Below are positions 58,623 to 64,000 of a DNA stretch of 64,000 nt, piece by piece. How positions within the stretch are numbered: the first letter of the stretch is position 1; each line of letters opens with the position of its first letter. Under the pieces are notes generated by a model, which did no database searches, was not told the DNA's origin, and was given only the letters and a program-made list of their open reading frames with translations. Source of the stretch: Basidiobolus meristosporus CBS 931.73 (lineage: Eukaryota > Fungi > Basidiobolomycota); the NCBI GenBank assembly GCA_002104905.1, contig MCFE01000030.1, forward strand, positions 1 through 64,000, read 5' to 3'. The position numbers were made by a program, and so were the translations under genes.

Positions 58623-60164
58623 ATGGCGACATCAGTTAATGTACGTATTTTCATGTATTGATTTGAATTGAAATTATTCTTTGACTAGACCATATCAAAC
58701 TAATCAAAACACTTTGGTACACAGAAGCCCGTAGCCCTGTTGAAGGGTCATAAAGATGCTATTTTATCTATTGATATTTCTGACAACTTTCTGAACAAAG
58801 GCTCTTTCCTTGCTACCGGATCAGGTTAGATCTCTAGGAACATCAACCTTAACACAATATGCTCATTTTACCTAGAGGATACAACGGCACGCATTTGGGA
58901 TTTAAAGACAAACAGAGTAGTCTGGGGATTTAAAGGCTTTGAAGATGCTGTAAATTTAGTTTGATATTGAATCTTTGATAGGATTGACATATAACTACTG
59001 TCTAAACACTAGATTACTAGCGTAAAATTCGCATCCAACACGTGCCCGTACCAATTCTTTGTTTCTTCCAGCAACAAAGTCTACGGATATGACCTTCGGA
59101 ACACGGAGAGCCCTATTATTACAAAATCGTCTGTAATCTATGAAACGAACGAAGAGGAGATTAATCAGGTACTTGCACATATTAGCTTTCAGGGATACTC
59201 TCTTTAACTCAATGATACTATTGAAAGATAGCTATTAATGAAAAATCCACACTACTTGCTACTTGTGATGATAATGGTGAAGTCAAAGTCACCGACATAT
59301 CCACCCAAAAGCCAGTCAAACGTTTCCGCCAGTGCCACGACAATGTAACTTGTTTAGTTGATCGCAGTACTGATATCATGTTGTATTGATTGTCTTCGAT
59401 ACCGTTAGATTGCTATGTCTGTTAGTTTCCGTCCCAAAAAGCCGTGGGAAGGTAATCTTGAAGTTTCCGGTTGAAATTATTCTGGCTAAATCATCTTTCA
59501 GTGTTTTCAGGTGGACTGGATAGTCAGTTAATACAGTGGGATTTTTCCCGCGGAGCGCCAATTCAAGTATTTAATATGAGTAAGTATTATCAATATTCTT
59601 CTAACCAGCATGATATTGATGGCACTCTGTCCTCTAGCTGAAGATGTTGATCAGCAACAATCCAATCAGTTGGTAAACCCACCTTTCGTCAATTCCGTAA
59701 CGGTATCTCCTGATGGAAAGATAGTTGCTTCCGCTCTGGGTGATGGAACCATCCAGATATTAGCTGCTGGGCCCAAAGGCAAAAACAGAGGAAAGGCTAG
59801 CTGGAACAAAGGCCGTCTTTATGGAGGACATAGCTACTCAGTGGCTCAAGTGTAATTTCTTTTATGTATCCCATACACTTGGAAAGATCGTCAGCTTACT
59901 TTTGTCATATGTAGTAAATTTAACCCAGCCGGTGATAAGCTTGCTTCAGCTGGAAATGAAGGGATGATAACTCTTTGGGATACCTCAAACCTTGTTGAGA
60001 AGCTAACAAATGACACTGCCGAAGATTTATGTCCTATCATAACTCAATTTCAGCCTGAACCTTTTGATAAGATCAACTCATTGGCTTTTATTGATCAACT
60101 CTATGTGGCCGGAACTGGAGCTTCACCAGAAGCCCATGGCGCCATAGCCATATACAATATATAA
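58623..60164 (+). CDS. WD40-repeat protein, WDR53-like (multi-exon)
   Basis: LKGHKDAILS..ATGS/EDTTARIWD, NEEEINQ, LLATCDDNGEVKV, SGGLDSQLIQWDFSRG, LVNPPFVNS and GGHSYSVAQV. Confidence 0.8.
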
Positions 60165-60366
60165 GCCTAGAAAGATATGGTATTCATATAATTGTCGTTT
60201 AGACCCAAGAACCTGTTGGGCAAGGTGTACGTAGCTCCCACATGCCATACTTCCTGGATTTTTTTGAATGGTATACATAAACGATTTATTGTTTTGCAAC
60301 ATTCAGGTATATACGAAGAAAATCAGAAGGTACATTAACTGATCTGAAGGGGTTTTGTCAATTTTT

Positions 60367-62875
60367 CTAATGACCAATAGTCAAATACAACCCATAGCCG
60401 ATTGTTACTATAATCAACAAAACTAAGCAAGAGGCTGGGATTCCATTCTTCAAGAAATCTTTGTTAGAGAGATAACGGACACCTACTTCGCTCTCGTGCA
60501 TGGCGGCAATCATATTAGAGAATCCAGAGATTGGTAACCCCATGGCACCAGAGCACATTAGAGTAGCGCTCTAAATTGAAAGAAAGTGAGATTTTGAGTT
60601 AATTTGAAGCGAAACTTCGATGACTATACCATGGTCAGAAGGCGAAGATGAGCACTAGGTAGGGTATTTTTCATGTTGGTGACTAATGGCAAAATGACCA
60701 ATGCACCAACCGAGTGAGAAAAGAATGTAGACATCACAAGGATTGCAGAACAAGTTATAACAAGGGCATTCCAGGGAGATAGATCCTCAATCACAGCACA
60801 AAGATATTGAGCAACTGCATGCAAGAGGCCAGATGATTCTACCGCTTCACCCAGCGTTATTCCTCCCATAGCTAGTATGACAACAGTCCATAAAAAATTG
60901 TTGAAATCCTCCTTGATTAGTAACCCAGATCCGAAAAATACGATCATTGGAATAATTGCGATGACACCCGGATCACCCACCATCGACGCTAGCTGAGACT
61001 CAACGCACAAGAAGATTAAAGTCAACAGAGTAACAAAAATTATGAATAGTTGCTTTCGTGAAAAGGCCTTGCGATCATTCGTGGTCAAGTAGTTTGGTAT
61101 ATGAGATGCTGGTTTGCAATTCCATAGCAGCAGTCTCCATACCGCCAAGTCACTAACCACACAAATCGGGAGAGTAATGCTATACCATTGAGTCCATGAA
61201 GAACGTGGTTGAATAATATCGATAGCAGTGGTATTTTCAAGTGAGCTTGTCAGTGATGCCATCCCACCTATATTCGACGCAAACGTAATCCCCATAATTA
61301 AACAGCGAGCGAAAGGGCTATTAGGTGGAAGCGTTCGCAAGATCGGCTGGATCAAAGAAAAGCAGAGGACTGGGCCCACTACATTCCCAACCCATATACT
61401 TGCTAAGGTGGCAACAGTCATACATATCAGTAATACTGTGCTGAACCTAGTGCCAATTTTAGAAAATGCCCAGGTAGTCATTATGTCGGCAACGTTGTAT
61501 TTGCCAAGTGCAGTGGTGATTGAAAAACTGCCCAATAATAGCATAATTACTGGGGCAAACATCGAAGCCAAAATACGTTGAGAAGCTTGTTGTGCCGTAA
61601 GTCGATTAAACAACCCATCATCAGACCGCAATACTCGGAGAAACACAGCCATCATCGGCACAAGAAGTGCAGTCACAAAAAGGGGTATAACCTGGGCAAT
61701 AATGAGTTTTCTGTACCGTACCATAATAAACAAAAATAATACCTCAGTTGCCCACGCAAGAGAAACAAAAACTAGCATGGCAAAACAGTTTTGTTGCTCA
61801 GAAGTATCAAAAATCTTCGCATAAACCAGAATAACAAGCACAACTAGACATGCGAGTATACCCAAGAGGCTAGCAGGGATTAATAGAGGAGATATCATCC
61901 CTTCCCAACTTCTACCGACAATTTCTTGAGTGGATTCCTGAAGCATACCGGCAGCTTCGACTTTTCTTTCCATACCTACTAACACTCTCCGAAATACGTT
62001 TCTTTTCCAAGCAAACTGCCTGCGGGAATATGATTTCAATTCCAACTCGGCGCCATCTATGTTACCATCATAAAATATGGTAGCAAAAGCACGCCCGTCA
62101 TAACTTGGCATATGGAGCGAGCTGTGTAGATATAGGCCAAAGAAACTAAAGCGCGTTTTCGCATCTCCGGAATACTGTCTGTTGGGTTGAAAAATACGAT
62201 TGACTACTCGAGATACTTTAGCGTTGTCAGGCACACCAAGCTGCTGTATATCGTTGCCAGTAATCTTTTCAAATTCTTCGAGTACCTTATTCATTACGAT
62301 GTGGTTTAGAGAAACAAATTTCTCGAGCTCTACGAATTTTGCGTAGCGATCTAGAAGACAAGTACGAATTCTTCGAGCTTTATCAGATGGTAGATCAGAC
62401 CAATTATAGCCTTGTCTAGCAACTTCCTTCCCCTTGTTTGAGATTGTTGGCCTCATTCCTGGAATGGAATTCGTTGAAAATATACTCATTGGGCCAAAGA
62501 GCGGTATAGCCTCGAATGGACCGATCTCAGACAGTAATTGTATTAGTTTTTCACTCAAAGAGGCTTTTGCTTTTTCATAGTAAATCATTGTTTTGATAAG
62601 TTCTGATCCTAATACAGAGGTAAAGATGTTGGTGGCCCTTGTAGTATCACTGATCAGACTTGCGGTTTCCAAGTCTCGAATAGTAGCATCTTGCGAAGCA
62701 ACTTCCTGCAACTGATCGAGAAGTGCTGTCAAATCAGAGTATCTAGCATTAGAAGCATAAAGGATAGTGTTAGAATTAGAAGGTGATATATGAATTATTT
62801 GGAGCACAAATACGCCAAGTAGTGGTCTTGCCAGTCTGCTATAGAACAGAATTGCAACGAACTAGAAAATTCCAT
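60367..62875 (-). CDS. SPX-domain DASS/CitMHS-family phosphate-transporter homolog (PHO87/PHO90/PHO91-like), divergent
   Basis: MEFSSSLQFCSIADWQDHYLA/YSDL (SPX start), AWKRNVFRRVLVGMERK, IPLFVTALLVP, ASNIGGMAS and CSGAMGLPISGF, with many TM helices. Introns lie after codon 21, at 61692-61742 and before the last exon. Confidence 0.9.
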
Positions 62876-64000
62876 CACGATTCAGAGTTGGATAGGCCAG
62901 CATGCGAGTACTCACCACATATTGCTCCGCTTTATATGCAGATCCATTCTGGTGTAGACTGTCGCACGATATCAGTTTTTGGAGATCCCATCTAAATACT
63001 TTATTATATATATAATGATAGCGGTCTAGTGCTATACGAAGATTAGGAACATTTAAAATACAGAATTCTTTGGTACAACTTTCCGTTTCCCATGCCGGTG
63101 GGAATATGTTAAGATCAGGAAATTCGCAATGATCAGGCAAACAATAGCTCATCATAGCTTTCCATTTGTATCGTAAGAGGATCATTTTGTCCATAAAATA
63201 CCTTTAGAAGTTGATATGTTTTCAACACCAATTCAGTTAGCTCTTCACCTCTACTCCAGACAATGCTGCTAGCTTTCTCATTGATAGTGTCAATATCCTG
63301 TATGGGTGTAGTTGTCGTGGATCCATCCCGTAGCCCACGAAGCAGGCCAGTCAAGCAAGTAGAGCGGGAGCAGTCCAGTGTAGCGTACACAGTAGTATTG
63401 GAGAGGTTCCGAGAAAGATTTGATTTACCAAAAATATGCTTTGTAGCCCAAGACGCTCCAACTGACATAGCAATTCCACTTTACTCTTTGCTTCAAAAAA
63501 CGGATCGAAGGTTTACTTTGAAAGGGAGGGTTTAGAATTAGTTGTAGATCGAAGACCTTGGAGCTTGACTTGTGTAGACTTAAATGTACTAGCTTTTGGC
63601 AACGTGAATATGAAACTACTGCTATGATTCAATACATCCATGGAGAAATACGGAGACAATGGATTTATAGGCAATTGCTCTGTGAAGATTAATCAACCCT
63701 GTTCAGTGAGTGGAGAATTTAACCTAATGTATTGATCACCTGGAACCTTACAGTGATAAGTCATTTGTTTTTGGTTTAATTTAGTTGGCGTCGGGTTTAT
63801 TCAAAAGAAGACCTAGGAGACTCCATTTTCCTATTTGACTCTCAGGGCCTGATCATATGGCAATTTGTTCACGTGCCATTTGTTTGATTCAAACGTAGCC
63901 GAATATGTGCAATATTCATCACTACGGATTGATGTAATGGAATAATACAAAGATGAAACAGATAAATAAACTACGCAAGATTTGAATCCACTCAACAATG

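Follow-up and report, generated by a model that had tools for sequence, protein, structure and literature searches.

A diverged Pho87/Pho90/Pho91-type gene of Basidiobolus meristosporus with substitutions in its SPX ligand surface and its substrate site

Throughout the eukaryotes, the phosphate signal carried by inositol pyrophosphates is generally received by SPX domains, whose basic binding surface is nearly invariant. What, then, is to be made of an SPX transporter gene in which much of this surface has been replaced? The gene in question is a minus-strand, four-exon gene running from 62875 to 60367 in a 64,000-nucleotide stretch of Basidiobolus meristosporus CBS 931.73 (contig MCFE01000030.1, positions 1 to 64,000 of the forward strand; hereafter the window). 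An initial annotation had proposed it to be a PHO87/PHO91 paralog blind to the phosphate signal. On balance we favour the reading that it is a transcribed gene under selection, a strongly derived Pho87/Pho90/Pho91 duplicate whose SPX domain is uncoupled from inositol pyrophosphates and whose substrate site is changed. It is a derived duplicate, probably signal-blind, of a known type of system.

Ligand surface and fold of the SPX domain

The substitutions reported by the initial annotation, K2 to E, K26 and K27 to T and A, and the central K-K of the helix 4 cluster to E-E, are borne out by alignment to 116 relatives, and the positions it gave for the M-E-F start, the T26 codon and the cluster are exact to the base (Table 1). 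Exons were searched, folded and aligned separately, exon 1 being translated and aligned as a fragment, and only the alignment rows were merged for counting. A different register does not rescue the lysines, which are retained under none of three kinds of alignment. HMMER aligned LNHIVMNKVLEEFEKITG to LNYTGLVKILKKYDKRTG in the crystal chains of rice SPX1 and SPX2 (helix K-I-L-K-K-Y-D-K), MAFFT gave the same residue register with 11 and with 116 relatives, and in the structural alignment residue 1 of the model (Y22) falls on residue 22 of XPR1, Gde1 and Vtc4. Among the 116 relatives in the MAFFT alignment both central cluster lysines are K in 115, the remaining row being gapped; K26 is kept in 109, K27 in 108 and Y30 in 109 (~94% each), and K2 in 97 of the 104 whose N-terminus is in the alignment. 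Further changes, beyond those first noticed, are Y30D, K34E and K221Q (B. ranarum numbering); TGF of helix 4 has become IVM and the SYPF motif is lost.

Binding by SPX domains has been assigned to a phosphate binding cluster (PBC) and a lysine surface cluster (KSC), comprising Y25/K29/K139 and K136/K140/K143 in AtSPX1 (bioRxiv 10.1101/2019.12.13.875393) and Y22/K26/K133 and K129/K132/K136 in Vtc4 (PMC9911596). Three of the six residues are replaced here, two of them by glutamate, and the full set of Y22, K26 and K-x-x-K-K-x-x-K is no longer present; Y22, K206 and K213 are retained, the latter two being the first and last lysines of the cluster. In XPR1, K26, Y30 and the two central lysines contact pyrophosphate groups, Y30 forms part of 'surface a', and K2 touches InsP8 via its backbone (PMC11926068). 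The backbone contact implies that K2E matters mainly for charge: the substitution is real, and its weight as the loss of a ligand site is lower than the initial annotation had assumed.

The net charge of residues 1–35 is −6, compared with a family median of +1, and that of the helix 4 segment −1, compared with +3 in relatives. Conserved basic residues are lost at six of eight positions on helices 1, 2 and 4 and at none of eight elsewhere (Fisher P = 0.007, with the grouping chosen post hoc). Every conserved basic residue of the C-terminal helices is retained, and helices 1, 2 and 4 have gained no new one. Might the domain still sense inositol pyrophosphates, through Y22, the first and last cluster lysines, further basic residues, or a joint surface formed with the transport domain or a partner subunit? 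The residues just listed as retained argue for this, as do the basic surfaces of XPR1 outside the classical site, which add to InsP8 binding (PMC11926068). We nevertheless consider residual sensing highly improbable, given the replaced PBC and KSC residues, the exchange of Y30 for aspartate and the reversed charge of both segments; alanine substitution of either cluster abolishes AtSPX1 function (bioRxiv 10.1101/2019.12.13.875393), and removal of charge abolishes export by XPR1 (PMC11926068). Judged from its sequence, the domain can reasonably be called putatively signal-blind. The 'constitutive' or 'dominant-negative' role that the initial annotation attached to this would be a guess.

The overall pattern is one of a fold kept and a ligand surface removed, which uniform decay does not fit. 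Descent from an SPX domain is apparent from the same place in the gene, the same position and phase of intron 1, and synteny with a canonical SPX gene. Pfam SPX (PF03105) scores query residues 22–291 at 20.1 bits, below the 27.8 cut-off, compared with 86.2 and 88.9 bits for the same region of P0003, a canonical copy in the same genome, and P0002, a canonical copy of B. ranarum. An AlphaFold2 model of residues 22–291 (pLDDT 76.2, pTM 0.68) has the predicted N-terminal helical hairpin and three-helix bundle of the family. VIA-align superposes the model on the SPX domain of XPR1 with a Z score of 13.9 and a root mean square deviation of 2.7 Å over 172 residues, its top 34 entries all being SPX proteins; Foldseek E-values are weak (0.06 or worse), with SPX entries dominating the list.

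When 1.84 billion representatives were searched exhaustively with the SPX piece (HMMER), the nearest sequences were ordinary SPX domains (~31% identity, E 3e-9), besides the gene itself and one spurious protein; the same SPX variant was found in no other sequenced relative. The spurious protein, P0121, is a leucine-rich-repeat protein of 1859 residues that came out as top match (E 6.9e-32) through the summing of 24 weak repeat matches. A word-indexed search with the SPX part gave no scored match, a blank that reflects divergence only, the region having no 5-residue words in common with its relatives.

Substrate site of the transport domain

The remainder of the protein matches Pfam CitMHS at 7.7e-25 and yeast Pho90 (8R33) at 6.4e-74 over 345 residues (HMMER). 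With its SPX plus CitMHS/Na_sulph_symp architecture and its Pho87/Pho90/Pho91 sequence membership, the gene is placed by search and tree as a divergent member of the Pho87/90/91 (SPX plus DASS) group, in line with the initial annotation.

In DASS proteins, substrate and Na+ are bound by two Ser-Asn-Thr motifs and adjacent loops; mutations in these elements abolish transport by NaS1, and bacterial and human proteins alike conserve the first motif (PMC7553777, PMC11584011). We located the substrate-site elements from the literature on VcINDY and NaS1 and from HMMER alignment to 8R33 and 4F35. The substrate/Na+ site is built from two SNT-type and two unwound-helix motifs, and each of the four has lost residues conserved in the family (Table 1), so that the altered transport motifs remarked on in the initial annotation are real. 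The substitutions are S475G, P520L, I521T, P524L, Q525E, T700S and P745S (P0003 numbering); six of the seven sites are 100% conserved in the 116 relatives, and P745 is 95% conserved. Going by these residues, transport of phosphate and Na+ may be altered in specificity or weakened. The substrate-site changes make a simple deregulated phosphate importer unlikely.

Origin, expression and selection

Is the divergence peculiar to this species? The genome also contains a canonical paralog (P0003, locus L001), which the initial annotation had suggested looking for, and B. ranarum has two canonical copies, P0002 and P0004. The gene shares both of its neighbours, in the same orientation, with the P0002 locus (L002), a WD40 gene downstream and a small open reading frame upstream; the P0003 and P0004 loci share a tetraspanin neighbour instead. 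These common flanks, together with three common intron positions, identify the gene as the positional counterpart of P0002. The same substitutions, which the initial annotation also proposed to seek in sister species, are absent from this syntenic copy. Since P0002 and P0003 are both canonical, the changes belong to this lineage alone.

A maximum-likelihood tree of the transport domain places the gene inside the Basidiobolus clade (SH-aLRT 100) on a terminal branch of 1.08 substitutions per site, more than tenfold longer than the 0–0.085 of the three canonical copies. Counting only columns that at least 90% of relatives conserve, it deviates at 27 of 50 in the SPX domain and linker and 44 of 197 in the transporter, compared with medians of 1 and 3 for other members; the canonical Basidiobolus copies deviate at 0–5 conserved columns and this gene at 71. 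Its SPX part is 34–36% and its transporter part ~67% identical to P0002; for the P0003/P0004 orthologue pair the corresponding figures are 81% and 91%. Nonsynonymous divergence (dN) from P0002 is 0.62 for the SPX part and 0.20–0.38 for the transporter, compared with 0.155 and 0.06–0.07 between canonical copies. Mutational bias as the cause of the long branch was ruled out, overall and third-position GC content matching the paralogs.

Synonymous sites are too diverged to calibrate these values. Four-fold degenerate sites differ at 0.5–0.75, even within the orthologous P0003/P0004 pair, and simulations of frame survival and core retention therefore took the place of omega. About 770 codons are free of stops and frameshifts, and all indels are in frame. 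When the P0002 coding sequence was allowed to drift neutrally down to the observed identities, the SPX frame stayed open in 0.05% of runs (P 0.0005; mean 7.4 stops) and the transporter frame in 0.8% (P 0.008; ~5 stops expected). Moreover, among 55 core positions where at least 85% of relatives have a hydrophobic residue, 47 still have one, compared with 37.4 ± 3.4 under stop-free neutral drift (P = 0.0013). Clear orthologues from B. meristosporus and 'B. ranarum' (GCA_040143965.1) differ at ~60% of their four-fold degenerate sites, a saturated level, and at the level of DNA the two congeners are very distant.

The initial annotation had named absence of expression, combined with neutral evolution, as a refutation; the gene is transcribed. 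RNA contigs, which come from a run within the same study and show presence and not isoform ratios, are 100% identical to the window, with introns 2 and 3 precisely spliced at sites corresponding to those of the canonical Basidiobolus copies. The contigs cover 62843-62375 and then run from 62341 downward. A scan for bacterial-type promoters and terminators found nothing, such a scan being irrelevant for a fungus. The start codon (ATG, 62875-62873, minus strand) has an in-frame TGA three codons upstream. Exon 1 encodes the N-terminal strand of the SPX domain, with E in place of K2, and helix 1; its homologue in each canonical paralog, likewise exon 1, terminates at the same GC of Ala21. The predicted splice of intron 1 would join it to A-Y22-S-D-L-T26-A27, and the loci of P0003 (L001) and P0002 (L002) have this intron at the same position and in the same phase. 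The confirmed introns have the 5′ splice sites GTATTA and GTATAG and intron 1 has GTATTT, a similarity that makes its splicing plausible.

Table 1. Features of the SPX transporter gene, by position in the window
Feature	Position	Strand	Remarks
Exon 1	62814..62875	-	ATG, 20 codons and 2 nt: MEFSSSLQFCSIADWQDHYL, then GC of Ala21
Intron 1 (predicted)	62743..62813	-	71 nt, GT..AG (GTATTT...CTAAT...AG), CTAAT branch site, phase 2
Exon 2	61743..62742	-	Remaining SPX-like domain, linker and first transmembrane helices; open frame
Modelled piece	61932..62741	-	270 residues, Y22 to end of last SPX helix (residues 22-291); AlphaFold2
T26 and A27 codons	62724..62729	-	Family K26 and K27; T26 codon ACA at 62729-62727
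Helix 4 cluster K-V-L-E-E-F-E-K	62265..62288	-	Family K-I-L-K-K-(F/Y)-D-K
Intron 2	61692..61742	-	51 nt, in frame, GT..AG; absent from P0001; removed in RNA contig record 3
Exon 3	60630..61691	-	Most of the DASS/CitMHS transport domain
First SNT-type motif W-V-G-N-V-V-G	61374..61394	-	Family W-I-S-N-V-A-A; serine invariant in 116/116 relatives
Loop L5ab motif S-L-T-S-S-L-E-N	61233..61256	-	Family-invariant S-P-I-x-S-P-Q-N
Second SNT-type motif F-S-H-S-V-G	60705..60722	-	Family I-S-H-T-V; threonine invariant
Intron 3	60571..60629	-	59 nt, GT..AG; removed in RNA contig record 3
Exon 4	60367..60570	-	Includes the stop codon
G-F-S-N-M	60511-60525	-	In exon 4; family G-F-P-N-M

Beyond the gene, the convergent WD40 gene (~58870-60165, plus strand; 349 residues) is ~70% identical to its B. 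ranarum counterpart and served as the synteny anchor. The upstream open reading frame (63139-63426, minus strand) is unannotated, has no Pfam match and shares ~48–53% identity with a protein of 129 residues annotated in B. ranarum (L002 1401-1790); an inverted copy of similar identity (~48–53%) lies beside the canonical paralog, at L001 960-1430.

Several observations weigh against the reading we favour. Evolution is five- to tenfold faster than in the relatives over the whole gene and not just at the sensor surface, and relaxed constraint after duplication fits this acceleration at least as well as a new function does. Synonymous sites are saturated in every comparison, NG86 and YN00 either failing or giving a dS above 2, and a rough dN/dS of 0.5–0.85 for the SPX part on this branch is close to neutral. 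The SPX frame could have stayed open merely because translation must cross it to reach the transporter. The AlphaFold2 fold prediction leans on an alignment of canonical homologues. The sole RNA contig across intron 1 (record 4, 62375-62843, depth 23.8), which stops 32 nt short of the ATG, is unspliced; with intron 1 retained the MEF frame stops after 26 codons, and a full SPX product is hence uncertain. RNA depth is 23.8 upstream of ~62375 and 85.8 downstream. Finally, the public gene model, K493DRAFT_205184, starts at M211 and has no SPX domain.

Would the translated product then lack all or part of the SPX domain? Translation might start at an internal methionine (62588, 62294 or M211 at 62111), leaving the SPX-like frame as an untranslated leader and making the gene a natural analogue of deregulated, SPX-deleted Pho90. 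The premature stop that retention of intron 1 places behind the MEF start is consistent with such a product, as are the step in contig depth with its 33-nt hole, the start of the public model, and the finding that removal of SPX leaves Pho90 active and unrestricted (PMC2710535). We nevertheless judge it quite improbable. An untranslated frame is unlikely to remain open over 231 codons (P ~0.0005), and the hydrophobic pattern has been kept, as have exon 1's start codon, splice signals and phase; M211 sits inside the SPX fold, between helices, and the contigs that suggest truncation tell presence and not isoform ratio. The hole itself, at 62341-62375, could mark a transcription start within the gene, an alternative junction or a break in the assembly. 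From M211 onward the protein is a 100% match to K493DRAFT_205184 (CBS 931.73). The ~230 upstream codons that this model leaves out (62112-62875, minus strand) are open, transcribed and homologous to the N-terminus of the paralogs, and a by-product of the analysis is the correction of an annotation that is short by ~230 N-terminal codons.

The same observations bear on whether the gene is a decaying duplicate, transcribed and open but without a selected function, in which the sensor and substrate-site changes would be the first visible damage. Decay would account for the many departures from conservation, which affect 54% of the conserved columns in SPX and 22% in the transporter and extend to 14 residues that never vary among 116 relatives; for motif changes at the catalytic site that are typical of loss of function; for the retained intron 1; and for an SPX dN of 0.62, which approaches the limit allowed by saturated synonymous sites. 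A canonical copy, P0003, is moreover at hand. It is unlikely all the same, in view of ~770 codons without stop or frameshift where ~7 (SPX) and ~5 (transporter) stops would be expected neutrally, of indels that are all in frame and of a hydrophobic core kept beyond neutral expectation. The transporter diverges at about one-third of the SPX rate, so both parts cannot be neutral; introns 2 and 3 are spliced precisely, and base composition matches the paralogs. The marks of a pseudogene, a disrupted frame, lack of transcription and neutral evolution, were not found, retention of intron 1 being a warning sign. Neutral evolution, which the initial annotation had paired with lack of expression as a refutation, is improbable on the open frame and the core, though the rough dN/dS of the SPX part is close to neutral.

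A more tentative possibility is that selection has kept the SPX fold as a ligand-independent module, locked in an apo-like state, on a DASS protein with a re-tuned anion/Na+ site, which could be either a transporter of another anion, free of control by phosphate status, or a non-transporting subunit that modulates the canonical copy within the obligate DASS dimer. Were this so, the gene would represent a naturally evolved 'blind' SPX regulator in one of these two forms.

The reading we favour, that of a selected but strongly derived duplicate, would run as follows. P0003 would cover the ancestral role in B. meristosporus, and the positional counterpart of P0002 has diverged. The helical-bundle core of the SPX domain is kept and its basic InsP6/InsP7/InsP8 surface dismantled (K2E, K26T, K27A, Y30D, K34E, KK to EE and K221Q), giving a domain that probably has no useful affinity for inositol pyrophosphates. 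In yeast Pho87 and Pho90 the SPX domain holds back flux and keeps efflux from occurring; it also binds Spl2 and directs degradation (PMC2710535, PMC7381174), and a blind domain could retain roles of this type without sensing phosphate status. Whatever SPX roles remain here, in contact with the transport domain, partner binding or sorting, would be uncoupled from the phosphate status of the cell. With all four elements of the substrate/Na+ site altered as well (SNV to GNV, SPISSPQN to SLTSSLEN, SHT to SHS, FPN to FSN), the outcome would be a sub- or neo-functionalised duplicate that has neither inositol-pyrophosphate control nor a canonical substrate site.

Comparison with known systems

The closest described systems are the low-affinity SPX–DASS phosphate transporters of S. 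cerevisiae, Pho90 and Pho87 of the plasma membrane and Pho91 of the vacuole (PDB 8R33-8R35). The architecture is the same and the gene falls inside the fungal clade. It differs from them in its replaced inositol-pyrophosphate contacts, in the changed SNV, SPISSPQN, SHT and FPN elements, in a linker between SPX helices 3 and 4 that is ~65 residues shorter, and in a Pfam SPX match below threshold. Also close are the canonical Basidiobolus copies (P0002, which is syntenic, P0003 and P0004), with which it shares intron positions and a fully supported clade and, in the case of P0002, the same neighbours; its 71 deviating conserved columns stand against 0–5 in theirs.

The weight of the case is limited, for it concerns a single gene from a single sequenced strain of a fungus that is hard to work with, and constraint is relaxed throughout and a full SPX product uncertain. 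Within those limits, a copy that keeps the fold without the binding surface could reveal the part an SPX domain plays in a DASS transporter beyond sensing its ligand.

The SPX domains of XPR1, Vtc4, CtGde1 and rice SPX1 and SPX2 have been solved with InsP6 or InsP8, and the predicted fold superposes on them with Z scores of 10–13.9 and in exact register from residue 22. Where XPR1 has K26, Y30 and the two central lysines, however, the window gene has T, D, E and E. In this respect it would be a natural counterpart of the engineered uncoupling mutants, namely SPX-deleted Pho90 and the alanine mutants of the PBC and KSC. Unlike those mutants it is natural in origin, and it combines loss of the ligand site with changes in the transport site.

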